Source: Rebecca billardiae RCC1528 (taxonomy: Eukaryota; Protista; Haptophyta). From it: 64,000 nucleotides of DNA. Positions 2,113 through 39,761 of this stretch are shown here, piece after piece. How positions within the stretch are numbered: the stretch's first letter is position 1; the number at the start of each line of letters is the position of its first letter. Location: assembly GCA_965240325.2 (NCBI GenBank), contig OZ251240.1, positions 1,240,001 to 1,304,000 of the forward strand. The letters run 5' to 3'. A program made the translations under genes and the position numbers. The notes beneath the pieces were generated by a model, which saw only the letters and a list, made by a program, of their open reading frames with translations, had not been told where the DNA came from and did not search any database.

Positions 2113-4765
2113 CCGGGGAACTTACAGTCAGACGCTCTGAATCGGCCCCCTCGCTCAGAGCGCTCTGAGCGAGGGGCCGATTCAGAGGGTTTTGACTTTT
2201 CCGCCCGCCCCACTGGCGAGCGCGGTGCGGGACGCACATCGCACTGGGGCGGTGCTCAGCACTGCACTCACGGCGCGCCGCGATGTGTTCGGGCGGTGGA
2301 CGGGGCTGAATCGGCCGAGAGTGACGGTGCGATGGGCCGTGGTGACTCTGCCATCACCCAGTGATCTCGTGCGGTGCCAGCTCGCCCTTCGCTTCGTCGC
2401 CACTCGCACTCGCACCAGTCGCGTGCGCCCATGGCTTGCCTTTCGCGCGCCGTGTTCCCGCGCAGTGTGTGCTTGGCAGCAGGGTGCTGGTGGCCGGTGG
2501 TTGCCGGCGCGGAGGAACGAAATGTTCGCAGCTACGCTACATCCCAGACGCCATGTGTCCGTCCTCGTCGAGCGATGGACAGACACGCGTGTCGCGCATG
2601 CGCTCGCAGAAGCAGGCTGCACAGCGGCGCGCGGGCCTGGCTGCACGCGCAGGACAAGCTGCACCACACAGCTGCCCCCGCCATGAGCCCCAGCTGCGTA
2701 CGCACACCTCTTCCGTGTTGTCTGATCCGCCAGGCCGACACGGTGCGGAGACTGCGTGCGTGAGACACCAACAGTCAGCGGCCACAGCGCACACGGTTGC
2801 GTGCGGCAGCAATCTGGCTTACAGCTTTCTCTCGGAAGCGATGGCCACGTCGACCGGCTGGCAACGTCGGTGCGCTAAGCGATGGCGCGACATCGCTGCA
2901 ACCTGCCGTTGGGGACCCCTCGCGCAAGAAAGCCCTCGTTCCTCGTCGGAAGGGCGGGCGCGACCGCGCCACGCGTCCCTCGCGCTGCTCGCATTGCTCA
3001 CGGCCACGCTTGCGCTCACGCTCGCGACATCGGCCGCGCCACCGCCCGTGGTAGTGAGCTCGGTCACCACCGCCGTGGTGCTTTCGGGTGCTTTACGTTT
3101 GCCCTGGCCTACCGTGCGCCGGCAGCCGCCAGGCGAGTGCATTGGCCTCCGGCCGGCAGGGCGGCCGTTCTCACTCTGCGAGTGCGCGCGCTGGGGCGAA
3201 CTGCTTCGGCACGCATGCCCGGCGTCCTGATTCAGACGGCAAGTGCATCTGCATCCGCCCGACACGCCGCCCACTGAGCGCCAGGCGCCGCACCGATGGT
3301 GCTATTGCTGCAGCTGAGCGGACCTGGTGCCGAGCGTCTGACGCTGTGCATGTTGCGAAACCCACCGCCATTGCCGCACCCGTCCGCATGCGCATGGGTC
3401 AGCGCTGCTTGAGGTGCTGCCGTCAGGCGCGCGCGGCGAGCGGCCTCCACCATCGGCACCGCCGCCGAAGTGCCAGACGCGGAAGGGGCTGTCTCGCCCA
3501 CGTACAGCGCTAAGCTGCGCGCCGGGCGGGACACGCCCACCACGCCCGGCGGGTACGAACTCCTCCTAAGGCTCCGAGCGCCGACGCTGTACGCGGTGAC
3601 GAGTTGAGCCCTGCTGCACAGCTTCTGCAAACGCCAAGTCTCGGACTCTGCTCAAGCTGGATTTTTTTTATTTAAAATCCCTGCAAGGCGGAATGTAAAA
3701 AGAGGCTGCATAAAATCCCAATCCGCAAGTCATCTCCCCTCATAACGCTGGTACGGCTGCGTTGAAGCTGCCAACGCGAGCCACAACAGTTGCTGTCCCA
3801 GCCGCAGCATCTGCAGCAGCTACTTGGAGCAGGACTCCCGCGACAGCGACCCCCCAAAGCACCTTCCCGCGCGGCTGCTCGGACGACAGTGTCCTTAAAC
3901 TGCCGCCGCTCAGCCGATCGTCGAGCCACAGCTGCCGGAGGTGCAAGGGCTGCGAGTGCTGTTGGCGATATGTCAGCAAGTGCGGGTGTGCCAGCGGCAG
4001 CGATGGGGCGACTGCCACCGGCGCTGTTGCTGTTTCATCAATCGAAGCAACGGCTGCATCAGCTGCTGCGCGCCGCCGCATGTGCCAGTGACCTGTGTGC
4101 GCCGTGGCCGCTGACTGTCGGTGTCTCACGCAGTCTCCGCGCGGTGTCGGCCTGGCGGATCAGACAACACGGAAGAGGTGTGCGTGCGCAGCTGGGGCTC
4201 ATGGCGGGGGCAGCTGTGTGGTGCAGCTTGTCCTGCGCGTGCAGCCAGGCCCGCGCGCCGCTGTGCAGCCTGCTTCCGCGAGCGCATGCGCGACACGCGT
4301 GTCTGTCCATCGCTCGACGAGGACGGACACATGGCGTCTGGGATGTAGCGTAGCTGCGAACATTTCGTTCCTCCGCGCCGGCAACCACCGGCCACCAGCA
4401 CCCTGCTGCCAAGCACACACTGCGCGGGAACACGGCGCGCGAAAGGCAAGCCATGGGCGCACGCGACTGGTGCGAGTGCGAGTGGCGACGAAGCGAAGGG
4501 CGAGCTGGCACCGCACGAGATCACTGGGTGATGGCAGAGTCACCACGGCCCATCGCACCGTCACTCTCGGCCGATTCAGCCCCGTCCACCGCCCGAACAC
4601 ATCGCGGCGCGCCGTGAGTGCAGTGCTGAGCACCGCCCCAGTGCGATGTGCGTCCCGCACCGCGCTCGCCAGTGGGGCGGGCGGAAAACCCTCTGAATCG
4701 GCCCCTCGCTCAGAGCGCTCTGAGCGAGGGGGCCGATTCAGAGCGTCTGACTGTAAGTTCCCCGG
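2113..4765. mobile_element. Non-autonomous foldback DNA transposon, ~680-bp terminal inverted repeats
   Basis: Arms 2113-2794 and 4095-4765 are near-perfect reverse complements. The flanking direct repeat is TTGGCAC (7 bp), or GTTGGCACC (9 bp) if the ends are 2114/4764. A subterminal palindrome CTCTGAATCGGCCCC...GGGGCCGATTCAGAG is present. No transposase ORF inside. Confidence 0.88.
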
Positions 4766-4821
4766 TTGGCACCGCCCCCATCGTGCGTGCCGGGAGCAGT
4801 GGCGCCTTTTGCAGCGCAAGC

Positions 4822-6597
4822 ATGAGCGCCGTGCTCCGCGCGCGGGCGGGCCGCGCCCCCCGCGCGCTGCTCGGGCCCCGGTGGGGCGCGCGCGCGTCGG
4901 CCTCGTCCTCGGCCGACGCGCCGTCGGCCTCGTCCGCGCCCGCGACGCCGACCAAGACGAGCAGCTTGCCACCACCGCCGGGCGCCAGCTCGTGGCGCGA
5001 GTACGCGGACCGCGCGCAGGACCGGCCGCAGCGCCGGCCGCCGCGGCTGCGCGAGCTCGACCCGACGGGGTACTACGGCGGGTACTACCAGACGATCAGC
5101 GCCACGTCGAGCGGCGCCGAGCCCAACGCCGACGCCGCCGACGCCGCCGACGCGCGCGGCGCACGCGCGCCCGCGCAGACGTGGGCTGAGAAGTTTGCCG
5201 CTCCCGCCGAGCCGCCGCCGCCGCCGCCGCCGCGCGAGTCGGAGGGCTGCCGCTTCGTGCGCTCGTTCGCGATGCGGCCGAAGGACGTGGTCGAGCGTCT
5301 GAACGAGTACGTGATCGGCCAGGACGCCGCGAAGCGCACCCTCGCCGTCGCCGTCTGCGACCACTTCAACCACGCGCGCCGATGCCTGGAGGACCCGTCG
5401 GCAGAATCGGCCGAGCGCGCCAAGCCCAACGTGCTGCTCGTCGGCCCGACGGGCTCGGGGAAGACGTTCCTCGTGCGCACGCTCGCGCGGCTGGTCGACG
5501 CGCCCTTCGTCCAGGCCGACGCCACCAAGTTCTCCGCCACCGGCTTCGTCGGCCGCGACACGGACGAACTTGTGCACAGCTTGGTCGACGCGGCGGGTGG
5601 CGACCTGCGCGCGGCCGCGCACGGCATCGTGTTCGTGGACGAGGTGGACAAGCTGTGCGCGAGGCACGGGCTGGCGGGGATGCTCGGCGGGGGCGGGGGC
5701 GGGGTCAACACGCGCGACGTGCAGACCTCGCTCCTCAAGCTGATGGAGGACGCCGACGTGCCGCTCGACGCGCGCGCGCCGGGCGCGCCGCCCGCGGCGC
5801 GCGCCGGCCGCGCGGGCGCGGACGGCGCCGCCGAGGGCGGCCGGCGGCTGAGCACGCGCCACGTGCTGTGGGTGTTCAGCGGCGCGTTCAACGAGATGCA
5901 CGCGCGGCTCGCCGCCGACGAGGCGCGCGAGGACGCCGCCGAGGACGCCGCCGCCGCCGCCGCCACCGCCGCCGAGGATGACCACGGCGGCGGCACGGCC
6001 GCTCCGCCGCCGCCCGCAGACGCCGCGCCGGCGCCGCGCCGCGCGCCGCCGAGCGGCGGCGCGCAGCGCGAGGCGACGCGTCGGCTGCGCGCGCGCGCGC
6101 GCGAGAGCGTGGGCACCGCGCACCTCGTCGACGCCGGCCTCGAGCCCGAGTTCATCGGCCGGCTCCCCGTCCGGGTGCGCTGCACCGGACTCTCGGAGGA
6201 CGACTATGTGAATATTCTGCTTCACTCGAAAGCATCGGCGCTCGCGCAGCTCGCCGACTCCTTCAAGGGGTACGGGATCGAGCTGACGATCTCGCAGAGC
6301 GCGGTGCGGCAGCTCGCGCGGCTCGCGATGGCGCAGGGCACGGGCGCGCGCGGGCTCGTCACCGCCGTCGAGGCCACCTTCCGCGACCTCAAGTACGAGC
6401 TGCCGTCGGCGGGCGTTACCCACTTTTTCGTCGACGAGGAGATGGTGGCCGACCCGCACGCGGCGCTCGAGGCGCTGCTGGTGGCGGAGGCGGCGCAGGG
6501 GGCGGGCGGCGCGGGGGTGGCGGGGAGGGGCGGTGGCGGCGGGGAGGACGGCGCGGGGCCGAGCGGCGGCGATGGCCCGGAGAGAAGGGGGCGGTGA
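4822..6597 (+). CDS. clpX: ClpX-like AAA+ ATPase/unfoldase, probably organelle-targeted
   Basis: LNEYVIGQDAAKRTLAVAV, Walker A GPTGSGKT, DATKFSATGFVG, Walker B IVFVDEVDK, VQTSLLKLME, PEFIGRLP, GARGL. Arg/Ala-rich presequence from ATG 4822; the track start at 4648 lies inside the transposon arm. Confidence 0.88.
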   Translation: MSAVLRARAGRAPRALLGPRWGARASASSSADAPSASSAPATPTKTSSLPPPPGASSWREYADRAQDRPQRRPPRLRELDPTGYYGGYYQTISATSSGAEPNADAADAADARGARAPAQTWAEKFAAPAEPPPPPPPRESEGCRFVRSFAMRPKDVVERLNEYVIGQDAAKRTLAVAVCDHFNHARRCLEDPSAESAERAKPNVLLVGPTGSGKTFLVRTLARLVDAPFVQADATKFSATGFVGRDTDELVHSLVDAAGGDLRAAAHGIVFVDEVDKLCARHGLAGMLGGGGGGVNTRDVQTSLLKLMEDADVPLDARAPGAPPAARAGRAGADGAAEGGRRLSTRHVLWVFSGAFNEMHARLAADEAREDAAEDAAAAAATAAEDDHGGGTAAPPPPADAAPAPRRAPPSGGAQREATRRLRARARESVGTAHLVDAGLEPEFIGRLPVRVRCTGLSEDDYVNILLHSKASALAQLADSFKGYGIELTISQSAVRQLARLAMAQGTGARGLVTAVEATFRDLKYELPSAGVTHFFVDEEMVADPHAALEALLVAEAAQGAGGAGVAGRGGGGGEDGAGPSGGDGPERRGR

Positions 6598-11827: not shown

Positions 11828-12027
11828 NNNNNNNNNNNNNNNNNNNNNNNNNNNNNNNNNNNNNNNNNNNNNNNNNNNNNNNNNNNNNNNNNNNNNNNNN
11901 NNNNNNNNNNNNNNNNNNNNNNNNNNNNNNNNNNNNNNNNNNNNNNNNNNNNNNNNNNNNNNNNNNNNNNNNNNNNNNNNNNNNNNNNNNNNNNNNNNNN
12001 NNNNNNNNNNNNNNNNNNNNNNNNNNN
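11828..12027. other. Assembly gap (200 N)
   Basis: Run of N. Confidence 1.
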
Positions 12028-13085: not shown

Positions 13086-14031
13086 TTATCGGTAACTGCG
13101 CAGAGGCAGCGCGGTCGCGAGGAGGCGGGCGGGAAGCGGGGTGAGACACGTCGCGCGGCCGCCACGAGCCGGCGCACGCCGCCGAGCACGCCGCCATCTC
13201 GGCCCACGCCGCGCGCCACCCGCTCGGCACGGCGCGTCGTGCCGGCTCCAGACGTCAGCAGGCTGCGCACGCACGCGCGCGCGCGGCGCATCACGCACCT
13301 CTTCTGGAAGCGCGCGCGGGCACCCGGACCGCCGAACTTCTTCGGCTCGGTGCGGCGCGGGTCGGCGACGAGGAGCGTGCGGTCGAACTGCACGAGGATG
13401 TCCCGGATCTCCTTCTTCGACGCCTCGTCCACGTACTTCTGGTAGTAGGCAACAAGGCTCTTCGCAATCGCCTGTCGCCAGCGCGCGGCGCGCACACGCG
13501 TGCAGGCGCGTGCACGGTGGGGAGGGCGAGCCGAGAGCGGGCGTGAGCCGATCGCCACGCTGGCTCCACGGACGAGGGCGCGAGCGCCCACTGCCCGAGC
13601 CGCCACAGGCGCGACGAGTCCGTCTGGCCACTGTCCACACAGCGCGGCCGGGCTGCGAGCCACGTGGCCCAGTGCAGTGCGCGAGCACACCCACGCCACT
13701 CGCGCGCCGTGCGGCGGCAACGCCAGGCGTGCAGCAGAGCCATGCCCCAGGTCCCCCCACGCGCTCGCACCTGCCGGATCGCGTAGATCTGCGAGGTGTA
13801 CCCGCCGCCCTTGCACCGGATGCGGATGTCGACCTGCGCGAACCGATCCTGGCCAAGCAGCAGCACGGGCTCAAAGACCTTGTACCGCAGCAGCTCGGGC
13901 TGAATGAGCTCGATGGGCGTGCCGTTGAGCTTGAGGATACCCTTCCCCTTCTTGCAGTACGCGACGGCCACCGCCGTCTTCTTCCGCCCGAAGCACTGCA
14001 CGGCCTGCGGCGCGCTCGCTGGCGTCGACAT
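13086..14031 (-). CDS. RPS16: 40S ribosomal protein S16 (uS9); exons 14031-13771, 13471-13299, 13095-13086
   Basis: [14 protein letters not shown]...[13 protein letters not shown]|[16 protein letters not shown]...[22 protein letters not shown]|YR*. Two canonical GT-AG introns. Confidence 0.97.
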
Positions 14032-14196: not shown

Positions 14197-14271
14197 AATT
14201 CTATGATTTAAAGACACAGGCACGAGGGCGCAGCTCTCCTGATTCGTCTGTAGTGGTACTGGTCGAAGCTT
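14197..14271. repeat. ~74-nt dispersed repeat, copy 1
   Basis: Reverse complement of 38566-38639 apart from a 1-nt indel. Confidence 0.9.
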
Positions 14272-17166: not shown

Positions 17167-18644
17167 TCAGGCAACGATTCGCCGCCGCCCCCTGCCAGTG
17201 CCAGGGTGTACGATGCCGCGACCGGATTCGCCGCCGTGCCTGGCGCGCGCTACGCCGTACGGCGCGCGCGCGCCCGCGCTCGGCCTGCCCTGCGCCTCGC
17301 CGCCTGCGGCCTCCGCCGCCGCCGCCGAGCGCGCCGCCGCGCCCGCGCCCGCGCGCTCGCGCTCAGCAATGCGCGCGGCGAGGGCGGGCTGGCCCGCGCG
17401 CTCGCACAGCAGGCTGAGCGCGTGGAGGGCGGGCGGCCGGAGCGCGCCGCCGCGCGCGGCGCGCGCGCGCACGTACAGCCGCAGCGCCGCGCGCAGCTCG
17501 CCCGCCGCGCACGCCGCGCGCAGCGCCAGCTCGAGCGTGCGCGGCTGCGGCTGGAGCGCCGGCCACTCGCGGCGCAGTTGGGCCTCCAGGCCGAGCACGC
17601 GCGAGAAATTGGCCGCGCGCAGCTGCGTGTGCATGAGCTGTTGATAAGTGAACTCGTTCGGACGCACATACGTCGAGAAGTGGTTGGTCCGCTGCTGCAT
17701 CGCGGCGAACACGTCCTCCGCCGCCGATGCCAGCCCCGCCTTCCCGTAGGCCTTGATCAGCGCCGTGTACGTGTACACATCGGGCGCGAGGCCTGAGTCC
17801 TGTACCGCTCGGAAAGTCCGGAGCGCTCGAGACACGTCCCCGGCGACGGCGCACGCGGAGAGAAGCGCGTTGTACGCCGCGACGTCCGGCGCGACGCCGC
17901 TCAGCTTCATCTGCTCGAACACGTCGAACGCGCGCGCAAGCGCCGGGTGCTGCTGCTGCTCAGCAGCGGACGCAGCCGCGGCCGCCGCCGCGGTCGCCGC
18001 CGCGGCCGCCGCCGCCGCCGCCGAGCTGTCGGCCGCGCCGCCGCCGCCGCCGCCGTCGACAGCGCGCGGCTCGGCACCAAGCTCAACGGCCGCGCCGCGC
18101 GCGCCGCCGGCGAGCACGCCGGCCTCCGCGCCGTCACCACCCGCGTCCCGCCCGACGAGCGTGCGCAGCACCGCCTCTGTCTCCTCAGAGTCCCGCGCCG
18201 CGCGCTGCAGCTCAGCAAGCAGGCGGGTGACGCGCGCCTCTGTGCGCGGCGCCGCGCCGGGCGCGCCGGCGCGCTGCGCGGCCGCCTCGCTGCCGAGCTG
18301 CGAGAGCGCGTCGCGCGCGGCGTTGGAGGAGCGATGGGCGTGCTCGCACGCGCGGAGCACCGCCCCGCGCGCGCTCGCCGAGAGCCGCGCGCCCTCGCCG
18401 AAGCCCCCAGTCGCCACCGCCGCGCCGCCGCCTTCGCCGCTGCCGTCGTCGCCGCCGCGCCGCGACGCCTCGCGCGGGCGCCGGTCATCGAAGATGTTGA
18501 CGAGCAGCCGCGCCGCCGCCAGCGCGCCGCGCGCCACCTCGCGCGTCAGCTCCACCGCCCGGCCGAGCTCGCTCTCGAGTCCGCTCTCGAGTCCGGGGAT
18601 CCGGGCGACGGCCGGTGGTGTCGCAGTGGGCGCGCGCGGCTCGC

Positions 18645-18680
<36 letters not shown>

Positions 18681-20043: not shown

Positions 20044-20075
20044 CGCGCCGACGCCCGCTCGCGTGGCCGCCCTTT

Positions 20076-21198: not shown

Positions 21199-21304
21199 GC
21201 CCTTTCGTGACGGGGTAGCTCCTCACCGGCGGCAGGAACCCCACCCGCACGGCACTGGGCAGATGAGCAAACGGCTCCGGAGCACGTGCCCGCTGCAGGA
21301 GCCA

Positions 21305-22358: not shown

Positions 22359-22372
22359 AGCCAGGAATCAGC

Positions 22373-23761: not shown

Positions 23762-24304
23762 TGCCAATGCTCACGAGTCAGCGGCACGGTCACAACTCAT
23801 CACAATTCAGCACATCCATGATATTATCACCGTCGTCTCGGCGCCGACCGCGGGCACTTGGGACCGCCTTAGGCCATCATCAGCCATTACTGCTGCTATT
23901 CTTACGACGCGCTTAATAATAAGGCTCGTCGCGCGATCTGTAGCTGTTCTGCGCGCCGCTTATTATTCTGGCCGCCGTTCTCTCTGGCTGAGGCCCCACG
24001 GCCCGGGCCCACCCCAAAACTACTATACCAACCCGGGAGTCGCGTGCGCACGCGCGGCGCGGCCGCGAGCTTGTGGGCAGTGCGCTGCAAGTAGTTCATT
24101 GCTGGCGATGTCAGCCGCCTTCTGCCGTTGCTGCTCACCATGACCAGTGCCCAGGCTGGGGTCACGGGCGTCCAGGGGTGGTTTATTAGTGGTGTCCGGG
24201 AGGAACGGCTTCAAGTTGCACTGCACATCCCGTGTTTTTTGGGCGCACAGCCCCCTGAGCAACCAAGGCCCTGCCACTGAAAGAGGGAGCACGGCCGAAC
24301 TCGG

Positions 24305-24386
24305 ACTCGTGATCACCTCCCTCCCACTGGGAGGTGATCACGAGTGGAGGGAGGTGATCACGAGTCTCGTGATCACCTCCCTCCAC
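24305..24386. repeat. Four copies of CTCGTGATCACCTCCC in forward/reverse/reverse/forward order
   Basis: Directly visible double hairpin, ~40 bp downstream of a CAAGG motif at 24264. Confidence 0.8.
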
Positions 24387-25665
24387 TGGCGCCGCCCGTT
24401 TGGCGCTGGCCGGGATGGCCGCGCGCGTGCGCGAGCGCCCGCCTCGCGTCGCGCGTCCCGCGCGCAGAGCGCGTGCTCGGCCGCGCGCGACGCGGCGGAG
24501 TCGAGGCTGACATGCCCCTGGCCCTCTTCGCGCCGCGCAACGCCGCCCACGCCCATCGCCGCTTGCACGCGCAGGCCTGCCGCGCGGCGGCTTGGGCTTT
24601 TTGGCACAGGCTGGCGGCGGCGCGCCGGGCCGAGGGCTCGGCCGGTGTTGCGCCCCTCGGCCAGGCCGAGACTTGGCGGAGGCGTGGGTAGTGCCATCGC
24701 CTGCCCAGATCCCGGGCCTCGCCGTCAGAGCGTGCACGCGAGGCGCGCTGTCGTGGTCGACAGGTGAGGCGCCGCGCGCTCGCCCTCGAGCGGGCAGCGG
24801 ACATACCGGCAGGCGCGGGCGCACACAGCGGGGCTGTCGAGCTGCTTGCGGCTGGGCAGATCGACGGCGCGTGCACTGGCCCTGGTCTGGTAGGCGTGCG
24901 CGGGTTCGGAGGCCGGTGAACGCTCGGCGCGGACCCACGTGTCTTGCCTGGCACGGTTGCGCGACAGGCGGCTCGGCGGCCAGTCTCGAGGCTGAGTGGC
25001 ATCAGAGCGCTTGCCGGCGTGCTGGCGTGCTCTACCGCCGGGCCGATGCCCACGCCTTGGCCAGGATGCGACCAGCCTCCGCGTCCTCCGCAGCCGCCTG
25101 GAGCCGTCGACCCGCCGCCCAATGGCAACGCGGCCGGCGGGCCGCGCTGTATGATAGCGTCAGCGCGAGAGGGCTGAGTTCGTGAGGGATATCCTAGCAA
25201 TCGAACCGTCTTCCTATTAATATTAATATATTGAAACGGGCTCCCTCTATTCCAAGCGGGTACATTTGAATACGCCCGCTATCAATAATAGTGCAGGCCG
25301 TGAGTGAGGACTGAGGCGACTACAGGCTGGTCTCACCAAGAACTTCCCGAGCGCTGCCGACGTGTCCGCGCTCGCGGCGGGCGAGCACGGGGAATCGGCT
25401 GAGTACGATCGCTCGCATCGTGGGTCTAGTCCCCGACAAAATTGTCCGCGGAGCCGCGCGCGTCGCTCACCTCGTGCCCGGCGCTCCGCCGCGGAGGCGC
25501 CGTCACAGTGGTTTTCACAGTGGGCCGAGCAGTCTGAAGTGGCGCTGAACTGAGGTTTCAAAGAAATAGAGGGGGTAGAACCGAAAGCTCTCCCGATTAA
25601 TATGGTTTCAGACTGCTCGCTCCGGAACACCGGGCTTCAGCTTCGTCACGCCCTCAGGCGCGGAG

Positions 25666-26731
25666 ATGCCCTGGTTGCTCCTCGCCCTGCACCTCGTCGC
25701 AGCCGCGCTGACTCTCGGCTCGTGCAGTGCACGCCCGACGTGCAGCCCGGGGCTTGAAGCCATGCGACCACGCAGAAACTCCACCGACCAAACCGACGAC
25801 GCGAGCGGCGCCGGCGATGGTGTCTCCAGGTGCGCCCGCGACCGGGCCTGAGCGTCGAGCCCCAAACTTGCCCGCGTGGCGCGCGACTGCCCAACACAGA
25901 GATACTGCGCGTAATTTCGTGTCCCTAAAGTATGGAGCCAGCGGGGCAGTGTGCTTACCCACCGCTCGAACCTTGAGGGACACGAATCTCACCCGTTTTG
26001 GCGCCCCCGAACCGCCCTCGTTTCGTGCGCACTACAGGTTGGCGGCGAACTGGTGGGTTGGGGATATCAACATGGCAAAGGCGCTGGCGGAGCACCTGAC
26101 GGGCAACGGCACGCCCCACGACATCATCAAAGACCGAGCGCGGCATGTCCCCGGTGTCGTAGACGGACGGATGGTGTACTACGTGAAGCCGGCCGGGCAG
26201 CCGAGCTATCTATGCCCACCGGCTCCTGTTTTCCAGCTCGAGCAGTTGTTGGCGCCCCTCTACGAGGATGGGGCTGTCGAGGAGCGCGCGCTCGCTGCAT
26301 TGCTCGCACGCGACGAGTTCGCCGAGGTGCTGCGGTCTGTCGCGCCCACGGTGGGCGTGTCGCTCGATTCGTCGGACGGCGCGCACGGCACGGAGCTCGA
26401 GCCTCGGGCGAGAACACTCGGCCTCATCCTCGCACACAAGCCGTTGCGCGTGAATGACCGGCGAGACGCGGGCGGCGGGCTCGTGAGCGCGTATGCGCTT
26501 CTCGAACGAAAGCTCGGCGTCGGGCACCAACTCGCGCCTCCCGCCCCGCCGCCCCCTGCTCCGGAGGCACCGCCTCCAGGATGGATGAGGGCTGCGGCCG
26601 CCTCGCGGCGCGCCAGCGCCCGTCGTCCTCGCCCCACCGTCGTCCGCCACAAAACGTCGTCCTCCGAACTCGCCGACTGGGCGCCGATGCAACAGCGCGC
26701 CGACAGGATGAGGATACGTATAGTCGCGTAA
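25666..26731 (+). CDS. Element-borne hypothetical protein with signal-peptide-like N-terminus (probable intron ~25830-25899)
   Basis: MPWLLLALHLVAAALTLG joins in frame, via a GTGCG...CACAG intron, to the 25727-26731 ORF. Confidence 0.45.
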
Positions 26732-27019
26732 TAATCTGCTATGTAATAAGTACGTACGTAAATTACATACAGTAATCCGGCGGCGAGCGCTGCTACTAGC
26801 AGTAGCAGGACTCACAGTGACAGTGTCACTGCCCCGAGTCATACAGACACAGCAGTGCCCGGCGCCGTGGCGCGCTGCTCACCTATATGTATATATAATA
26901 TATCTGTGACTACTGATATGATGACACGTGACGATATATATATCATCGATGACGCGCTAACTGACAATCATTGATGATACATCGTAGTCGAAGTCACTCG
27001 TCGTCAGCATGATCGCCGC

Positions 27020-28681
27020 TCACAGCAAAGGGGTCTGCACTCTGCCGCCCGCGCTGGCTGCATTGCCGAAGCACGCCTGCACGCCCTTCGTGATCAAGTT
27101 GAGGTGCTCGACATCAGCACCGTCATTGACCTCGTCGTCGAGCAGGCAGCGCTGCTGCTCGCTCTCGATGTCTGCGAAGAACGAGTCCACCATGCGCTCA
27201 TCAGCCTTCACCTCCTCTGCTGACTGCCCTTCGCCATCAGCCTCGTCGACGTCTCCAAGCGCAATCGCCTTGGCAAGCGACTCACGATGCGTCAGCATCG
27301 CCTCGGGCGCCGGCACGCTGAGCTGGGCGCCGGGCGACTTCGCCGCGACCGTAGCGAGCTTGGTGCGCAGGTTGGCCCGCTGGCTCTCCACGGTGAGCGA
27401 CGTGAACATGTGATCGAGAGCCGTGCGTGCAAAGTTCGGGCCGCGCACGCGCATGTACTTGTCCACGAGGAACTCGAAGAGGGCCAGCTGCTCCGCCTCG
27501 GCAGGCTTGGGGTCGGGCAGCGTGGCAGCGAAGAGCGCTGCGCACTCCGCACTAGCCAGGATGAGCTTGGACGCCTCGAGCATGATGTCGCCCCTGACGA
27601 GTGCGATGTGGTCCCGAGTGAGGACGGCGACGACGTGCTCCTCCATCCTCCACACGAGCATGAATAGCTCCTTGCGTGGGAGGTAGAGGGCAGAGTCGTG
27701 CACGTTGCGCCTGAGCGTACGCACCGACGGCAGATCCCAGAGGGACACGACATCGCTGCTCGCGAGCCCGTTCGCCTTGAGCCACGCGAGCCAAAAGGGC
27801 CCCGCTTCCAGGAGCGCCTTGGTACCGTGGCAAGCGGCAGCCTGCACCTTGCGCATGAGCCAGCCGGTGAGGTAGTACAGGAGCTGGGCGCGGAGGTCCT
27901 TCACATCCGGCGAGCAGGTCGGTGGCACCTGGACGGGTGGGTGGGCGGCGAGCTTTTCGCACGTGGCCGCGAAGAGCGCCTCGTCCAGCTCGTCCAGGAG
28001 CGCGACGTGCAACATGGGCCGAGCGTTCACAGCTGACAAGCTCCGGATCGCCTCCTCTGCGCGCGCCGCGTGCTCCTGGATAAACGCCTGTCGTGTCTCA
28101 CGCAGCTCCGAGTGGAAGGCCGAGCGCACGTTGCCGATCGCCGTGGTTGACTTCGCGCGGTGAGTCGCCATCACGTCGACCATGGCCCGCACGCGCTCCT
28201 CGAGCTCGTCCCCGAGCGCCGAGGCCAGCTTGTCGAAGCGGGCTGGCGTGGGATCACCCATCAACATCGCCGCATGAGAACTCGTCCGGCAGAACTCGAC
28301 GGCGCGCTTGACGATGAGCGACCTGTCGCCTAGCTGCTTCAGCGTCGACTCGACGAAGCCGCTCACCGGCGCCAGCTTCACACGCTGGGGCGGATCGAGG
28401 TAGCGCTTGTACGCGAGGGCGATCTGCCGCTGGCTGAGCTTGTGCCGCACCTTGATGAGCTTCAGCTCCAGCACGCGGTCGATCTGCGGCAAGCCGTTGG
28501 CGTTCCCCTTCGTCTTCCTCTTCTCCCACTCGGCGCTCTTCGCCTGGAATACGGCGACGAGCTCCGCCCGTGCGGCATCGGTGAGCATGGCTGCGGGGAT
28601 CAGGGGCGGACGACGCCAGTCTTTGCCAAGTGCGGCGGCGCGGAGCTGGGGCAAGCCGTCCGGACTCTGAAGCCCGGTCAT
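27020..28681 (-). CDS. Element-borne 553-aa protein with a motif resembling P-element transposase C-terminal/transposon accessory domains
   Basis: Long intronless ORF with coding-like codon use. LLYYLTGWLMRK...RRN..ALYLP..ELF..VWRME...KYMRVRG recalls the YIAGY...RGGL.P pattern. No DDE core recognised. Confidence 0.6.
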   Translation of the reverse strand: MTGLQSPDGLPQLRAAALGKDWRRPPLIPAAMLTDAARAELVAVFQAKSAEWEKRKTKGNANGLPQIDRVLELKLIKVRHKLSQRQIALAYKRYLDPPQRVKLAPVSGFVESTLKQLGDRSLIVKRAVEFCRTSSHAAMLMGDPTPARFDKLASALGDELEERVRAMVDVMATHRAKSTTAIGNVRSAFHSELRETRQAFIQEHAARAEEAIRSLSAVNARPMLHVALLDELDEALFAATCEKLAAHPPVQVPPTCSPDVKDLRAQLLYYLTGWLMRKVQAAACHGTKALLEAGPFWLAWLKANGLASSDVVSLWDLPSVRTLRRNVHDSALYLPRKELFMLVWRMEEHVVAVLTRDHIALVRGDIMLEASKLILASAECAALFAATLPDPKPAEAEQLALFEFLVDKYMRVRGPNFARTALDHMFTSLTVESQRANLRTKLATVAAKSPGAQLSVPAPEAMLTHRESLAKAIALGDVDEADGEGQSAEEVKADERMVDSFFADIESEQQRCLLDDEVNDGADVEHLNLITKGVQACFGNAASAGGRVQTPLL

Positions 28682-29686
28682 TTCAGTCCGGGAGGTGAGC
28701 TTTCGGTTCTACCCCCTCTATTTCTTTGGAGGTTTCGTCGGGGTTTCCGCAGTCCGGCGGGCTTCTGCCGCTTCGGACGCCCAGGCGGCATCCATCACCA
28801 CGAGGTCGGCCACGCGCGGACCTGGCCCGCGCGGAGGCGGAGCATGGCGCACTGCTTGATGACTGCGCCCGCGCGAGCCGTTCCATGATCGCTGTGGTTA
28901 CTGCCAAAGCCCCTGCCTCTGTTGGTGGGACCTCGCCAGATGCACTTGTCACTTGCGCGCCGCTCGAACGGCTCCGAACGAACACGACGAGCACATTGCA
29001 CTTCGTCGCAGTTGGCTCACTCGCAGCAGGTATTCGAATCTGTCGCAGTGGAAGCGGGGGGTGCGAGAGCCTACGTACGTCTGTCAAGGGCAGCCGCACG
29101 CTTCAACATTGCGAAGGAGTTCCGCCCTGAACAGTGCGGCGGCAAGGCGGGTTGAGTGTGCTCCAAGCAACATCGTCAGGCACTGATACAGGTGGGGAGG
29201 CGCAGGAAGGACGTTGCAACGAGCGCGATGAGGCCCACATACCTCGACAGCATGGGAGAGACGCGCTGTGGGACATGAAGACACCTGTCACTCATGCCAG
29301 GTCCCACGTTGACCCGCAACGCTCGGCGGCTTCTGCGGGCGAGAACAACGACGCAATGTTTCAGTGCTACAGCGAGGGTGGGGATGAGGAGAGGGGCTTG
29401 GGGTACGGGCAACCGTGTGAACAACACCACTAGGGGTCGCACGGACCGAGATCGCGCGCCGTTCATTTTTTGCAGGGGGGTGGGGGTTTGAATCTCGACA
29501 ACGGCGGGGCGGACAGAGGCGTGCGACCCCTCGTCGGAGAGCTCTCGATGCGGCCGATTTAATGGCGCCATCGAGAATTTTCCGCAGACGCAGTGGGACT
29601 GAAAAAAAAAATCCAAAGCCTCGGGAAGTTCTTGGTGAGACCAGCCTGTAGGCGAGGGGACCGCGTCACGAAAGAGTGTGGAGGTG

Positions 29687-30829
29687 ATGGTGACGCTCAT
29701 CATGCTCGCGCTCGCGCGCCTGCCGATGGTATCGGCCTGCACGACAGCGATGCCAATGGTCTTGCGCGCCTTAGGCTCCGGGTCCGCATCCGACGCCGAG
29801 CTGCGTTGCCAGACCCCGGCGCTCACCGGCCTAACGACGGACTACTGCGTCTCCGACACTCATCTGCGTCTCCTGCTGTGCGGCACGCCGAAGGGATCGG
29901 CGACCACCACGGTGAGGCTCATGATCATGCAGCTCGGCCTTCAGGATGAAGTGCGCGCGTTCAACGCCGCACAAGGGATCGCATCAGGCACTTGGCCTCA
30001 CAATTACGTTCACGAGGTGTTCCACTTGCAGCCCGAGCACCAGCTGCAGCTGCAGTCTCAGAAAAACGGCACACTGCTGTGCCGGCAGGAAGGCTGGCTG
30101 TGCATCAAGTTCGTGCGCAACCCGTTTGACCGCGCGATCTCATCCTTCCTTGCTACCGTATCGAAGTTGCACATGCCAGCCGGGCAGGTGGAGCAAACTT
30201 GGGCGTGGCCGGCGCTCACCGACACGGTCGGCGAAGCAGCGCTGCGCGCTGGCGACTGGTCGTTCGCTGACTTCGTGCGGGCACTCGAGGTGACCGCTGC
30301 CGCAGCGAGGCGTGCGGGGAGACCTGCCGCCTCCCTCATGGGGACCGGGGTTGCACGGCATGTGTTGCCGCAGTCGTTGGCGCGCCGGAAGGGCCGGTCA
30401 AGTACGCACGCCCCTGGCGACGAGCAGCAGGAGGATCCGACGGGCGACGATGCGGACGGCATGCACCTCGTGCCTATCGAGAGCTTGGCGACAAGGCTGC
30501 GCGCACTGGAGAAGCAGTTCCGACCCGATCTGCGCCTGTCCGCACACGCGCTCAACCTGAGCTCCGGGCACTGGAATTCAAGGTCGCACCTGCCGAAGAG
30601 CGAGGCAGCTGCCAATGCCATGCTGCCGCCAGTCAACGTGACCACCGCCGCAGTGCAGCTGTGCTCTGGTTTCACGCGAGGCCACTCGTGCTCGAAATTT
30701 CCTGCGGGCGCATACGATGCGATGCAGCACAGCGGGTGGGCCAGTGTCTGGAGTAAGGTTGGCTGTCTCTTCGCGCATGACGTTGAGCTCTTTGCAAGGT
30801 CCTGCGCGGCGCAGCAACCTGAATTATAA
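29687..30829 (+). CDS. Sulfotransferase family 2 (carbohydrate sulfotransferase-like)
   Basis: CGTPKGSATT (5'-PSB-like), KFVRNPFDRAISSF (3'-PB), SFADFV, HVLPQS. N-terminal signal or anchor. Confidence 0.78.
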   Translation: MVTLIMLALARLPMVSACTTAMPMVLRALGSGSASDAELRCQTPALTGLTTDYCVSDTHLRLLLCGTPKGSATTTVRLMIMQLGLQDEVRAFNAAQGIASGTWPHNYVHEVFHLQPEHQLQLQSQKNGTLLCRQEGWLCIKFVRNPFDRAISSFLATVSKLHMPAGQVEQTWAWPALTDTVGEAALRAGDWSFADFVRALEVTAAAARRAGRPAASLMGTGVARHVLPQSLARRKGRSSTHAPGDEQQEDPTGDDADGMHLVPIESLATRLRALEKQFRPDLRLSAHALNLSSGHWNSRSHLPKSEAAANAMLPPVNVTTAAVQLCSGFTRGHSCSKFPAGAYDAMQHSGWASVWSKVGCLFAHDVELFARSCAAQQPEL

Positions 30830-32960: not shown

Positions 32961-33365
32961 TCAGACAGTGCGCCACCCGCAGCCCTGCCCCCCTAGTGGC
33001 CCTACGGGAGCGGGGCCGGGATGGAGCACCGCCTCGGCCTGGGGCACGCGGCGGCGACGGCAGATGCCGCCGCGGCCGAGCGCCTTCCGGAGCACTTGGA
33101 TGAGGGTGAGGTCGTAGTCGATGTCGCCGCCCGCCGACCTAGCGGCGAGCAGCTCCGGCAAGCGGCAGCCGCGGCTGTCGCCCCCGTGCGCCCGCGTGGG
33201 CGCCTGGATGAGGATGAGGTCGTAGTACGCGTCGCCGCGCGCCGGCCAAGCGGCGCGCAGCTGCAGAAGAGGGGCTTGGAGAGTGAGCGCGCCGCCTAGC
33301 GCGCTCTGGGCGATGAAGCAGATGAGGTGGTAGTCGATGTCGCAGCCCAGCCCGCCGGCGGGCAT
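32961..33365 (-). pseudogene. Gene fragment with three degenerate 108-bp (36-aa) repeats, abutting a (TA)n tract
   Basis: DIDYHLICFI / DAYYDLILIQ / DIDYDLTLIQ at 108-bp spacing. Confidence 0.35.
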
Positions 33366-33368
33366 ATA

Positions 33369-33408: not shown

Positions 33409-33412
<4 letters not shown>

Positions 33413-35611
33413 CTGATGCAGAGTGCACGGTACCTGGCTGGTATACTCTTCGTAGGTGGGTCCCTGGCGATTTTCCAGCGGTCTTTTAAACATTTACCGG
33501 GTTCTCTGGCCGGATTTCTTTCGCGCGGGGCGCGGCTCGGGAAAATCGCCGGGCCGCCGGCCGAGGTCCGATCTGAACGCTCCCGACGATGTCGGAGTGC
33601 CTCTCCAGCGCGACCGAGCCGCCGTGTGTCGGGTAGACTACTGCCAACACCTATCGCGCGCTCCAGCGCTTTGCGCGTGCTCACGGATGGGATCCGTGGT
33701 CACACATCCCCCGCCTGGCACGTGCCCGCATGTTTGACTCTCGCCCGGCTAGACGCGTACAGACAACTTGAATCGATCGGCAGGTGTTCGACCCGTGCCT
33801 TCGAGCAGGGTCACTTTTCGCTACAGGCGGGTCAGGCGACGGGAGGCATGGGTCACCATCAGGCATGTGCATACTCTTGACGCTCCCGCCATCTTGAGCA
33901 GCTCTACGCACCGTGAAGGTGACAATTGGGCTGCGCGCAAGCTGCTCGTGAGAACGCACGACAGCCAGCCCCGGGCTCTCGGGGAGCCATGTGAGCGATT
34001 GGCGACTTCCGAGAGGGCGTGTTTGGTGGGGGTTGGTACCAATCATCGACCAGCAGGCCTGGGATGGGTGCACTGAGGACTTGGGATGCTGAGAAGCCGC
34101 CGCGATGTGCATCGAGCACGCTGACTTGCCATCCGTGTGCACGATCAAGCGCCAGGAAGATCAGCAGGGCCTTTGACAGCGGCAGCAGGCGCTCAGCGAT
34201 CCTTCCCTATGCCGAGTGTGGGCATAATATGCGGTGCTCGAGCGTGGTCGCAGGATATGGGTCCATTCTTGACAGAACGCGGTCGCGTTGACAGGCGCGG
34301 GTGCCACCCCACGCTGTTGCTCCTGCCATCGGGTGGTCCCACTCGTTCCGCTTGTTATCTGCGAAGACTCGTACTCAGCAAATCTACGGCTAGGCGTGGT
34401 CGACCCCTCAGACGCATGTCTGATGATTGCCCAGCACGTTCTCGTCGTCACGTTGGGTGTACTTGAGCGAGCGGAAGCCGCAACGTGATGGCTAGGCCAG
34501 CAGCTCAACCATCTGACGTCTCGCCGGCCAACTGGCTGAGTGCTCTCAGCCTAGCAGCAGCGTCGGTGAACCTATCGTATTGCTGCCTGGCAAGAAGATT
34601 GTAGGAGGTATCGTCCACGGCATGGGCTGCAGCTGCGGTAGTCGTGGACTGGTGGCGGCCTCACGCGGGTGGGCATACGACGACCGGTGACACGCGGAGT
34701 ACGAGCACGCGGAGCACGGAAGCCGCCGAGCGCGGCAAGCTCCGGCGGTGGCGTTGGCTGATAGTCCAGCCTCGACGGCGGAGGGCTCCCGTGTGACGAC
34801 GGTGGCATGCTCGGTGGCGGGCGATGATGCGTGCCTCGGCATGCAGCCCGCCACAAACACTGCCACTCGCAGGCAGTCCGGTTGCGGCCCGGTTTGCCTG
34901 TGTCCGCGTCGCTCGGCGCCTATTCGATGACCCAACAAACGTACCCACATATCGGAACGAATTTGAATATATAGTGAGCCACATCCACGGTCAATATAAA
35001 GTGGGTAACCGTCGTTCTATATACGGGTAATTGGTATATACAAAGTGGGTAATCTGCTCGATCTTGCTGTAGTTTGTTGGAGGTATCCGCGCACAGCATA
35101 GAGCCCCACTCTTTGCTTCATAAAATGGTTCGGTCGGGTGTCAACGGTTGCCAATAAGTCGTTCCGATCGCATGTCGCCATCTAGCCACCATAACCATCA
35201 AGTAACGCTTCGCAAAATCTCTATGTGACACTAGTGGCGCGGCGCGCGCGCGCTCGGCCGCGCGACGGCACGCGGAGTAGGTTTTGAGGTCGAAACTTTT
35301 GCTCCGCCCCGATGGGACGCATTTATAGCGTCGATTCTGGGTGAGAGACGAAAGCTAGGACGCCATTCTGAGTGCGCCAGAACATCGCCCCAGTTGGGAG
35401 GGACCCACCTACTCTTCGCCATCCGCCATCGCACTCGCTTCATTCACGGTTATATATATTCACTGATTCACGCGAGGGTGCCCGCCCGGATGGCGGATTG
35501 ATACTCTCTCCTCTGAGTCTCTCGCGGGCCGAGCGATCGGATGCGGAGCAGCAGCCGGGCGCAGCCTCCGGAGCAGTGAGAGACGAGAGTACCAGACAGG
35601 TCAGCTGCTAC

Positions 35612-36936
35612 TCAGTCAGCTGCGGCAGATGATTGCGAGCCCCCTAGCCGTGCTGCCTGTGCCGCGCACCACGCGTTGCAGTGGGGCTTGTGCACCTTCC
35701 ACGAGCTGCGCAGGTGCTCACGCGAGCAGAAGACCGCCACGTGGCACCGCTCGCACTTCTTGAGACCACGGCCTGTCCGTGCGCAGGCGATGCAGCACTG
35801 GGAGACCACCTCGCGCTCTCCAGCTGCCACAGCCAGCGCATGGCACGCTCGATCTCTGAGGCTGGGATCGAGCTCTTGGCCACGGCGCAGCAGCCGCGCG
35901 CCCTCCTCCACGTCACGCTCCACCAACGCACCCACCAGCATCAGTGCTCCCAGCGCGAGGTGTGCATCTGCGCTCCCGCCGTCAATAGCCAGACGGAACC
36001 AGCGCGTCGCCTCGCTGAGATCGATCGACACGCCCTCTCCATACGAGTAGTGCATGCCCAGATGGTACTGCGCTGCCGCATCGCCCTGCTCTGCTGCCAG
36101 CCGGTACCAGCGCACTGCCTCGCCCCAATCCTGCTGCACACCCTTGCCGTGCTCGTAGCACAGGCCCAGATTGAACTGCGCTTGCACATAGCCCTGCTCA
36201 GCCGCCAGCCGGTAACAGCGCACCGCCTCGCCCCAATCCTGCTGCACACCATTGCCACGTGCGTAGCACACGCCCAGATTGCACTGCGCATCAGCATCGC
36301 CCTGCTCGGCCGCCAGCCGGTACCAGCGCACTGCCTCGCCCCAATCCTGCTGCACACCCTCGCCATGTGCGTAGCGCATGCCCAGATTGTACTGCGCGGG
36401 CGCATCACCCTGCTCGGCCGCCAGCCGGTACCAGCGCACCGCCTCGATCCAATCATGCTGCACACCCTTGCCTTGATCGTAGCACACGCCCAGATTGCAC
36501 TGCCCTTGCGCAAAGCCCTGCTCGGCTGCCAGCCGGTACCAGCGCACTGCCTCGCCCCAATCCGGCTGCACACCCTTGCCTTGCGTGTAGCACGCGCCCA
36601 GGTTGCACTGCGCTTGCGCAACGCCCTGCTCGGCTGCAAGCCGGAACCAGCGCGCTGCCTCAGCCCAATCATGTTGCACACCGTTGCCTTGATCGTAGCA
36701 CGCGCCCAGATTGCACTGCGCTTCTTGCCTGCCACGTAGACGTCACCCACCCTCACCTGCGCATCGGCAAAGCCGCGCTCGGCGGCGAGGGTGTACAGGC
36801 GAAAGGCTTCGCGCTCGTCCTGCGCGATGCCGTCGCCAACCTCAGCTCGCTCCGCCAGAAGGAACGTCGCACGCGCGTCGCCGCGCCCCGACTTGCGCCA
36901 GAGGAGACCGACCGCCGCGGAAGCGTTCGTCGCCAT
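35612..36936 (-). CDS. SEL1-repeat protein with C-terminal MYND-like finger; frame break near 36716-36756
   Basis: At least six near-identical 36-aa repeats WGEAVRWYRLAAEQGDADAQCNLGVCY. C-terminal CIACARTGRGLKKCERCHVAVFCSREH...HKPHC. Confidence 0.88.
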
Positions 36937-37225: not shown

Positions 37226-38324
37226 TCATTCCTTGTACAGGTCGTATCTGATGATGTGCGCGAGCACCGCCGCGGGGATCAGCCCCTCGACCATCGAGTA
37301 ATTCCGCCCGCTCAGCTGCTCCAGCTCGCGCTCGCCGAACTTGTGCTGCTGCGGCACGTAGCTCGACGAGCGCTTGGTCAGCGCCTCCGGCGGCTGCTGC
37401 GGCACGTACGTCAGCCGCTTCCGGATTTCTGACGACGACATCTCCTGGCTGGCGAGCGTGAACGCGCCGCCGGGCGCCTCGAGCTCGATCGCCTTCGGAG
37501 GCAGCTCCTGCGCGCCGAGCTCGTACCCAGGCCTGCGCGCGGCGTGCGCGCGGGGCAGCGGCGACGGGCCGGCGCGGAGAGTCACGCGCGGGCGCGCACG
37601 CGAGCGCGCGCGTCGAGAACGCTCGACGTGCGCGAAGCCACAGCACCACGGGCGAAGCAAAAAGCGCCGCGCCGTCGCGGCGCCGGCCGGCCACGGCCAC
37701 GCACCTGCGGATGACGATGAACGCAATCTCGTCCCACAGCCGCTGGCCCTCGTCCCACTCCTTGAGGTGCGGCACCAGGTCGGACCTGGGCAGCGCCGCG
37801 GCAGCCAGCAGCGGCACGGCCGCGCAGGCGGCGCGGGGCGGCAGCAGCGGGGCGGCGAAGTCAGGCGCACAGCACAGTCCGCAGCTTGGCTCGGGCGCGG
37901 CAGGGCGGCGTGGGCGTGCGCGCCCCGCGCACCCGATAACAAAGAGCGGCTCGATGTCGGGCCGCTTCCTATTGAGCATCTGCAGCAGGTCCCACGTGGG
38001 CAGCGCCTTCTCCTCGTGCAGCTCAATGTCTGAGACTTTGACGGGGAATCCGGAGCCGAACGTGGTGTTGACGGCGAGGTGGCACATGAGCAGCCGGTCG
38101 AGCACGCTGCGCTTGAGGGACGGCTTGTCAGGGCGATTGCCGCACGGCACGAGCCAGACCTCCGCCGCCGCGCCGCAGTGCACGATCTCTGCCGCGCACT
38201 TGAGGTGCGCGTCGGTGATCGGATCAAAGCTGCCGCCCAGCAGGGCGACGCGCTTGCGCGGGATGCGTGGGCTCGAGGTGTCCCTCCCGGACTGTCCGGT
38301 CAGCATCTCGGCGAGCTGCTGCAT
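37226..38324 (-). CDS. Cytidylyltransferase-fold NMN/NaMN adenylyltransferase (NadD-like), spliced
   Basis: ALLGGSFDPITDAH, VWLVPCG.RPDK, FVIG|SDL, IVIR|RPGY, MSSSEIRKRL, V..HII...LY. Confidence 0.85.
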
Positions 38325-38555
38325 CGTGGCTGGGGGCGCGTGCCGGGCTCAGCGAGCCGCCCGGAGCACGCCGAGTGAGCACCCGCACGGCAGCCCTCCC
38401 GCCCAGTCGGCAGTCGTGGACGTCAAGCGCCAGCAACCCAGGAGGTCGCAGCGACCCAGCGACGACCCGAAAAAGACAAAGATGGGACTTCGTCGTCAAA
38501 GCAATTCGCATTTCGCGAGCACCCGCCGACGACGATTTGCCGAGGAGCACCGCGC

Positions 38556-39761
38556 CAAGGGCGGTAAGCTTCGACAGTACCACTACAGACGAATCAGGAG
38601 AGCTGCGCCCTCGTGCCTGTGTCTTTAAATCATAGAATTGGTAAGGGCTGTCAACTCCCAGTGGCGCCGAGTGGCGGAGGTTCCGTGCCCCTCAACTCGT
38701 GCGGCCTCGCGGCGCAGCGGCTAAGTCTCCTGGGGCGCCGCCCTGGAGGGCGCGTGGGGTGCGCACGCCGCGGGCTCATGCGCCCGCGGCAGCGGCCGCG
38801 GACACGGCGCGCGTGGTTGGTCGCCTGCTAGACAGCACGTAGTACCCTCCCACGCCGCGCGCCGCGCTCGCCGGTGCCCTCGCCGCGCCTCAGGCCAGCC
38901 GCGCACGCGCGCCGCGCCAATGGCCAGCCGTGGCCACGAGCCAGCCGCCGGCGCGCGCGCGGTGCGCGGTGCGGTCGGCGCGGGTCGGGCGCGCGCCCGG
39001 GGCGAGGCTCGCGTATGATGGGCGCGCGTCATGCCGCCTCGCGCCGCCGCGCTGACGCCCGCATGGGTCGGCGCGCACGCGTTTACATGCTGTCGAGTGT
39101 GCATTGCCATGTTTGAAAATGCTCACGTTGAGACGATCATGGGACGGCAGCGACGCGTGATAGACAAGCGCAGACCACTAATATGTGCACGGCCAGCCTC
39201 ATGTCATGGCAAGCAAGTCCCCGAGTGCCCGCGTTCGTCGCACTGATGCGCTCACAACCACTTATCCAAGCTCATTTCTGATGGCCGAGGAATGCTCGAC
39301 GAGCACTCTTCAGCAGCCGCGTGCAACGTGATCAAGCTCGTGGGTGGCGGCGCGAGGCGGCATGACGCGCGCCCATCATACGCGAGCCTCGCCCCGGGCG
39401 CGCGCCCGACCCGCGCCGACCGCACCGCGCACCGCGCGCGCGCCGGCGGCTGGCTCGTGGCCACGGCTGGCCATTGGCGCGGCGCGCGTGCGCGGCTGGC
39501 CTGAGGCGCGGCGAGGGCACCGGCGAGCGCGGCGCGCGGCGTGGGAGGGTACTACGTGCTGTCTAGCAGGCGACCAACCACGCGCGCCGTGTCCGCGGCC
39601 GCTGCCGCGGGCGCAGGAGCCCGCGGCGTGCGCACCCCACGCGCCCTCCAGGGCGGCGCCCCAGGAGACTTGGCCGCTGCGCCGCGAGGCCGCACGAGTT
39701 GAGGGGCACGGAACCTCCGCCACTCGGCGCCACTGGGAGTTGACAGCCCTTACCGCCCTTG
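38556..39761. mobile_element. Non-autonomous foldback element, 416-bp TIRs, CAAGGG termini, 7-bp TSD; left arm interrupted by a nested insertion
   Basis: 38556-39048, minus a 77-nt insert, is the reverse complement of 39346-39761. ACCGCGC lies at 38549-38555 and 39762-39768. Confidence 0.9.
38566..38639. mobile_element. ~74-nt dispersed repeat, copy 2, nested in a TIR arm
   Basis: Absent from the right arm. GGTAAG is duplicated at 38563-38568 and 38640-38645. Confidence 0.8.

Follow-up and report, generated by a model that had tools for sequence, protein, structure and literature searches.

Inverted-repeat transposons immediately upstream of start codons in a 64-kb window of a haptophyte-type genome probably reflect integration at transcription-start DNA

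The best described examples of DNA transposons that settle at the 5' ends of genes are the P element of flies and Mutator (Mu) of maize, whose de novo insertions are most frequent within 50 bp of a transcription start while 3' ends are avoided, a behavior referred to as "precision-targeting" (PMC7337890). The P superfamily also includes Galileo, which combines very long terminal inverted repeats (TIRs) with 7-bp target-site duplications (TSDs) (PMC4168063). Among haptophytes, the Shanks elements of Tisochrysis lutea similarly create 7-bp TSDs, have short TIRs, and encode two open reading frames (ORFs) of ~793 and 580 aa, neither of which is recognized by Pfam or HHpred; Repbase files them under hATv and the group is known only from haptophytes (PMC10138859). 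The current study concerns a 64-kb stretch of contig OZ251240.1 from Rebecca billardiae RCC1528, hereafter the window, in which six independent insertions of TIR elements all lie 14-87 bp upstream of start codons. As insertion of P and Mutator near transcription starts is already established, this is a new instance of a known behavior. We consider it probable that the elements are non-autonomous DNA transposons, most of them P-mobilized foldback derivatives, which preferentially integrate at open transcription-start DNA.

An initial annotation of the window had claimed five different TIR elements. An unbiased element scan covered all 64 kb and sought inverted 11-mers flanked by TSDs, while long inverted repeats were located with a repeat finder and self-BLAST and their ends then read directly in the sequence. 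Four long inverted repeats were recovered in this manner together with a fifth pair having 35-nt arms (25317-25351 and 29620-29654). TIRs and a direct TSD, the signature of cut-and-paste DNA transposons, are present at each of the five inserts, which are therefore real elements, as well as at two additional ones. The description of them as five different elements is less accurate, since E2 and E4 belong to one family and a 7-bp TSD is common to five of the seven elements. The seven elements and two further features within them are as follows:

2113-4765: E1, non-autonomous long-TIR element, arms of ~650-685 bp that are 97% alike, terminus CCGGGGAACTT; 7-bp TSD TTGGCAC at 2106-2112 and 4766-4772
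20076-21198: E2, foldback-type element, 396-bp arms with 1 mismatch, 331-bp spacer, terminus CAAGGGGAG; 7-bp TSD GCCCTTT at 20069-20075 and 21199-21205
21305-22358: E3, foldback-type element, 429-bp arms with 1 mismatch, 196-bp spacer, termini GAGGCC...GGCCTC; 5-bp TSD AGCCA at 21300-21304 and 22359-22363
25320-29651: E5 (outer element), TIR of 32-35 bp starting CTACAGGCTGG, ~1.15 kb without the element nested in it; 4-bp TSD GCGA at 25316-25319 and 29652-29655
25559-28728: E5i, nested in E5, TIR of 36 bp starting CAAAGAAATAGAGGGGG; 7-bp TSD GAGGTTT at 25552-25558 and 28729-28735
27023-28681, minus strand: ORF of E5i, 553 aa, predicted all-helical
33453-35411: E6 (probable), TIR of 13-16 bp starting TAGGTGGGTCCCT, the weakest of the seven; 7-bp TSD CTCTTCG at 33446-33452 and 35412-35418
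38556-39761: E4, of the E2 family, arms of ~415 bp, terminus CAAGGGCGGTAAGGGC; 7-bp TSD ACCGCGC at 38549-38555 and 39762-39768
38566-38639: mini unit of 75 nt interrupting the left arm of E4 at a distance of 10 nt from the true end of the arm

The genes whose start codons lie next to the five elements of the initial annotation are:

4822-6597, plus strand: ClpX-like AAA+ gene (clpX), start codon 56 bp from E1
17167-20043, minus strand: PPR gene, ATG at 20043, 32 bp from E2
22373-23761, plus strand: OB-fold/CCCH methyltransferase-like gene, with its ATG 14 bp from E3
29687-30829, plus strand: sulfotransferase-like gene (Sulfotransfer_2, 27.5 bits), 35 bp from E5
39822-40379, plus strand: S26 (IMP-type) peptidase gene (IMP2), start codon 60 bp from E4

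These five gaps reproduce those first reported exactly. For each locus, the pre-insertion sequence was rebuilt by deleting the element and one TSD copy. E1 separates two divergently oriented genes, gA on the minus strand (ATG 1511) and clpX (ATG 4822), whose common spacer measured 650 bp before the insertion. E4 sits between another divergent pair, an NMNAT-like gene on the minus strand (ATG 38324) and IMP2 (ATG 39822), with a pre-insertion spacer of 284 bp. E2 and E3 share a single divergent spacer between the PPR gene on the minus strand and the methyltransferase gene. It was originally 140 bp long and has been cut by the two elements into pieces of 32, 99, and 14 bp. E5 is a composite, as the 3170-bp E5i is nested inside of it, and E6 sits 87 bp upstream of a small minus-strand ORF (ATG 33365) and 193 bp downstream of the stop codon of a gene encoding Sel1 repeats and a MYND finger. 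In the rebuilt sequence, the assigned ATG is the first in-frame start after a stop codon for clpX, PPR, sulfotransferase, and IMP2. In the methyltransferase gene, a further in-frame ATG is found 51 nt farther upstream, within the island that separates E2 from E3. However, its homologues have 22-32 residues ahead of the conserved OB fold compared to 32-35 for the reported start, and these N-terminal lengths thus favor the reported ATG. The downstream frames look intact, as had been proposed, and Pfam confirms their families (ClpX-like AAA+, PPR, OB-fold/methyltransferase, Sulfotransfer_2, and S26 peptidase), with the coding signal of the sulfotransferase-like gene being weaker than that of its neighbors. 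Reading frames of the PPR (20463-20044, minus strand) and methyltransferase (22043-22372, plus strand) genes also remain open into the element arms as far as an ATG inside of the arm. These extensions look like chance, given their ~75% GC and lack of codon periodicity, and gene callers may predict N-terminally extended PPR and methyltransferase proteins there.

Closeness to a start codon was compared with an element-free gene map comprising 21 spacers and 15.2 kb of intergenic DNA, in which distances to the ATG were measured. Five of the six insertions fall within 60 bp upstream of an ATG, versus 8.3% of the intergenic DNA (binomial P ~2e-5), and all six fall within 90 bp. When spacers were capped at 500 bp to allow for unrecognized features, the conservative value was P = 4e-4, so the enrichment does not vanish once short spacers are taken into account. 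The scan for TIRs and TSDs recovered only the five elements, E6, and E5i across the 64 kb, none of them outside of spacers bordering a 5' end. The divergent spacers number five, account for 10% of intergenic DNA, and contain four of the six elements (the spacers holding them measured 140-650 bp), while the five convergent spacers, totaling 3.8 kb, have none. The enrichment near start codons exceeds chance. The pattern exhibits both aspects of precision-targeting, namely enriched 5' ends and empty 3' ends, for six insertions in one window and as measured to the ATG rather than to mapped transcription start sites. About half of the closeness is nonetheless geometric: for E2 and E3 it is largely forced, since almost any insertion into a 140-bp spacer would be within 60 bp of an ATG, whereas it is not forced for E5 (35 bp in a 1.6-kb spacer) or E1 (56 bp in 650 bp). 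With that reservation, the earlier suggestion that the elements target transcription-start regions is supported at the scale of the window.

The same distances bear upon whether the pattern could be due to survivorship only, with elements inserting at random and persisting only where an insertion just upstream of an ATG was sufficiently harmless. A compact genome in which gene bodies occupy ~57% of the window would indeed remove coding insertions quickly. However, 92% of the intergenic DNA lies more than 60 bp from an ATG and yet holds just one of the six elements. The convergent spacers are empty, as are several spacers of 1-2 kb, and one would expect more disruption from an insertion placed 14-60 bp ahead of an ATG than from one within a long spacer. 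Furthermore, the arms are 97-99.8% identical and a copy of the E3 arm from another sequencing run differs at only 1 of 429 positions, suggesting that the insertions are young, which favors biased integration over long-term sieving. We therefore regard survivorship as improbable and infer that the bias arises at integration and not by later selection.

It is equally relevant whether the elements exist as assembled. Arm identities of 99.5-100% combined with short spacers are what one would expect if chimeric foldback reads had been assembled into long perfect inverted repeats. Contrary to this, every element has a TSD, and for E2 as well as E3 both junctions between arm and spacer are represented on contigs from two other public runs. 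The junction between E4 and IMP2 is likewise crossed by a contig (L004) that was found via IMP2 and, coming from the same organism, does not constitute independent evidence. It starts 25 nt inside of the right end of E4, shows one mismatch over positions 39737-42069, and departs from the window sequence only next to a microsatellite. An assembly artefact is excluded. The elements are also mobile or multi-locus. On a contig of one run (X1), an E3 arm with 1 mismatch in 429 (99.8% identical) ends exactly at 21305 and continues into a different flank, and in a second run (X2) an E2-like arm with 11 mismatches ends exactly at 20076, again followed by a different flank; their identical ends at other flanks place these families at other loci. 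Presence at more than one locus also extends to the 75-nt unit found in the left arm of E4, which interrupts the arm at 38566-38639 and thereby causes the repeat finder to start it at 38640. The second copy of this unit (14197-14271) is 98.7% identical and lies 166 bp upstream of the RPS16 ATG. The unit has no clear TIR and the copy near RPS16 has no clear TSD. No empty site was recovered in the contigs of four sequencing runs, and exact-product look-ups for the methyltransferase, clpX, sulfotransferase, and g10 matched no record. The nearest relatives obtained in homologue searches are only 42% (methyltransferase) and 64% (clpX) identical, making an orthologous empty-site comparison impossible.

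Several inferences can be made from these features regarding how biased integration would have produced the arrangement. Firstly, there would have been at least six independent insertions of non-autonomous DNA transposons, or seven with the nested element. Most of these would be foldback derivatives having long arms, 7-bp TSDs, and C(A/C)(A/G)GGG or CAAAG termini, probably mobilized by a P-superfamily transposase encoded elsewhere, accompanied by two other types with 5-bp and 4-bp TSDs. Secondly, the transposases would prefer open, nucleosome-poor DNA at transcription starts, as has been documented for P and Mutator. In a compact genome, such DNA would consist of spacers of only 140-650 bp that are often common to two divergent genes, and it is presumably the shortness of these promoters that makes the bias look extreme. 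The TSDs have no common motif, and the occurrence of three TSD classes at the same type of location suggests recognition of something general, for example open chromatin or the initiation machinery, rather than of a sequence preferred by one transposase. Targeting of RNA genes in the manner of Dada elements was also considered and rejected, as tRNA and Rfam scans placed no RNA gene near any element.

A number of points weigh against biased integration of P-mobilized elements. No transposase of any kind was found in the window among the ORFs that were scanned, which include both of those in E5i, and Repbase files Shanks under hATv and not under P (PMC10138859). The TSD lengths of E3 and E5 differ from the rest, so a property of one transposase cannot explain all of the insertions. 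There are only six events from one window, which was chosen by the initial annotation precisely for its pattern, and the gene map was home-made from ORFs, codon log-odds, and Pfam, such that some of the long spacers may hide features. Lastly, integration bias and selection are not formally separated by these data.

The initial annotation went further in suggesting that the arms either supply outward-reading promoters, which would replace those of the genes, or are otherwise tolerated. Promoter donation, in which the outer parts of the arms would carry the promoters, would be compatible with targeted insertion. In its favor, the host DNA remaining before the ATG is only 14 bp at E3 and 32 bp at E2, and a perfect 400-bp hairpin would lie in the path of any transcript initiated in the 99-bp island. 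The genes concerned have intact ORFs and normal coding signal, and a precedent is available from maize, where Mu TIRs can, and often do, supply outward-reading promoters (bioRxiv 10.1101/2023.06.05.543741). On the other hand, with insertions this young, intact ORFs are no proof of continued expression, and the outer arm ends of the different families have no visible motif in common. Overall, we view promoter donation as a possible but rather unlikely addition to biased integration, and due to the Mu precedent it would represent a new instance and not a new principle. A more ambitious version is somewhat less likely still, namely that P-like foldback arms carry outward start sites, swap promoters, and keep the genes expressed, with several unrelated TIR families having converged upon this arrangement. 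For the PPR and methyltransferase genes, the choice is between transcription that starts in the arm ends or spacer remnants, transcription that reads through the 400-bp perfect hairpin, and silence. We presume that the host genes remain expressed.

The elements could alternatively be tolerated as introners are, with transcription starting farther upstream and the element being spliced from the 5' untranslated region through splice-like termini. Some termini do resemble splice signals: reading inward, E4 has CAAGGGCG followed by GTAAGG and E2 has CAAGGGGAGTCAG followed by GTACAG; reading outward, both have TTGAC or CTGAC and then a pyrimidine-rich run; and E1 has an outward-facing GTAAGT eight bases from each end. 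However, E3 and E5 have no such signals. GTGCG is the start of all six introns delimited in the window and GTGAGG that of a short candidate from the Sel1-MYND gene, while none start with GTAAG or GTACA. Splicing of the elements is accordingly very improbable, and their identity as introners is unlikely, given termini that read GTAAGG or GTACAG or lack a signal altogether versus the local GTGCG consensus. That consensus is a GC-rich 5' splice site found in all six introns (13451-13767, 37598-37664, 43947-44055, 50645-50872, and others). The Sel1-MYND gene (35612-36936, minus strand) contains six tandem repeat units of 108 bp and a frame change near 36680-36720. A stretch of 41 nt at this point, GTGAGG...CAG, could represent an unusually small intron.

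Returning to the elements that we believe were integrated preferentially at transcription-start DNA, their affiliations can be examined through structure and TSD length. E1-E4 have a foldback or Galileo-type architecture, with arms of 396-685 bp surrounding middle regions of 196-1300 bp, and their arms exhibit no codon periodicity. E2 and E4 have arms with 66% identity across 345 bp, and judged by this sequence similarity the two are members of one family. A search of metagenomes with the 20-nt E2 terminus yielded no match. Within the arms of E1 (2131-2186 and 4692-4747), a near-perfect palindrome of ~52 nt (CTCTGAATCGGCCCC...GGGGCCGATTCAGAG) lies beside the terminus and could be a hairpin or a nested mini-element. 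The TSD length typical of the P superfamily (7-8 bp) is found for E1, E2, E4, E5i, and E6, each having 7 bp, and these five probably form one P-like superfamily. By TSD length, E3 (5 bp) and the outer E5 (4 bp) are outside of the P superfamily and constitute other, unclassified families. E3 was also considered as a Mutator element and rejected, due to its 5-bp TSD with no 9-bp match and the absence of a MULE domain from the window.

E5i provides the most direct connection to a transposase, even though it encodes none itself. Its 553-aa ORF has no match in Pfam, PHROG, PDB sequences, Atlas, or Foldseek, and the AlphaFold model is all-helical, which rules it out as a DDE transposase. Identical copies of the ORF are present on three contigs from the same organism, all of which begin at the element end at position 28726. 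More distant relatives occur in marine metagenomes and in one MMETSP transcript at 22-31% identity (41% for a 94-aa fragment). On two metagenome contigs (L005 and L006), which fall into one 90% cluster and thus represent a single lineage, the ORF relative is convergent to a protein of 822-973 aa. The 973-aa protein of L005 passes the Pfam cut-offs for TNP-like_RNaseH_N (31.8 bits versus 24.6) and TNP-like_GBD (25.7 versus 24.8). Accordingly, a predicted P-type transposase with an RNase H domain and a GTP-binding insertion stands beside the E5i ORF relative on L005, and the same is listed again for L006. Upstream of the ORF, L006 also has a sequence starting CAAGGGG and sharing the block AAATAGA.GGGGG.AGAAC with the E5i TIR. 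No THAP match was obtained for the 973-aa protein at E <= 1, which may be explained by divergence or a mis-called N-terminus. These domain matches link E5i to P-type transposases through its metagenomic relatives and lend support to a P/Galileo-like assignment of the CAAGGG-ended elements with 7-bp TSDs. A distant relative of the ORF is also encoded on a JGI metagenome contig (L007, 1-4498) having identical inverted ends of at least 80 nt, and this contig may be a complete long-TIR element.

The window surrounding these elements has ~68% GC and is gene-dense and intron-poor, with long ORFs having GC at 85-95% of third codon positions; the elements account for ~19% of its length. Named protein relatives come from haptophytes and stramenopiles at only 40-64% identity, which indicates that the organism is poorly sampled. 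An assembly gap (a run of N at 11828-12027) coincides with the 3' end of a GH79-like gene and no continuing coding signal was found to its right. The nearest element is more than 7 kb away and the gap has no bearing upon the element finding. In the 1.56-kb non-coding stretch from the methyltransferase stop codon to E5, a palindromic motif of 17-22 nt (GGGAGGTGATCACGAG) alternates with its complement to form a cluster of four copies at 24304-24387. Microsatellites are present at 42125-42689 and 56896-57183, consisting of (TCTA)n for ~415 bp followed by (TG)n and of (AT)144, respectively, within surrounding DNA of 68% GC, and a shorter (TA)n run directly adjoins the ATG at 33365. The minus-strand genes 49394-51283 and 53235-54391 are tandem paralogues without a Pfam match that share an intron position and common blocks of 97% and 83% identity.

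With these results, targeting of transcription starts by DNA transposons, previously known in flies and maize, would be extended to a GC-rich haptophyte-type protist. Since the shared promoters are only 140-650 bp long, every such insertion must silence or re-wire one or two genes, and if the arms do donate promoters, the elements would constitute a natural promoter-shuffling system in a compact protist genome. Young, low-copy elements of this type could also be used for promoter trapping or tagging and to mark open chromatin. A useful side result is that a haptophyte group with two ORFs and 7-bp TSDs, currently filed as hATv, may be tied to P-type transposase domains.

Among described systems, the elements closely resemble the P superfamily. 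Like Galileo, they combine 7-bp TSDs with long, near-identical TIRs and a short middle, mostly without a transposase (PMC4168063), and like the P element they exhibit a strong preference for promoters and transcription starts (PMC7337890). Relatives of the E5i ORF are paired with proteins bearing the P-specific RNase H N-terminal and GTP-binding insertion domains. The element termini are of the CANRG type, the consensus used for the P superfamily in the Repbase classification. Unlike P-superfamily elements, however, those in the window lack a transposase, the related transposase lacks a detected THAP domain, and the relatives carry a second, all-helical ORF. The host differs as well, being a GC-rich haptophyte-type protist, and the TSDs do not have the AT-rich palindromic target motif of Galileo. 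The introners of Micromonas and Aureococcus, which Huff et al. reportedly described in 2016 as TSD-flanked, non-autonomous DNA transposons of protists whose genomes are compact and GC-rich, are short, lie inside genes, and have working splice sites, whereas the elements examined here are 1-4 kb long and upstream of coding sequence. Mu TIRs start with GAG, as does E3, and Mu makes 9-bp TSDs, in contrast to the 5 (E3), 7, or 4 bp of the present elements, for which no MULE transposase was found. Maize Mu shares with them its long TIRs and its insertion within 50 bp of transcription starts (PMC7337890). Finally, the 553-aa E5i ORF and its two-ORF relatives fit the description of Shanks. Shanks is filed under hAT, whereas the related transposase identified here matches P-type domains. 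The E5i ORF may be an unrecognized ORF2 of Shanks/hATv, and the two groups may be the same.

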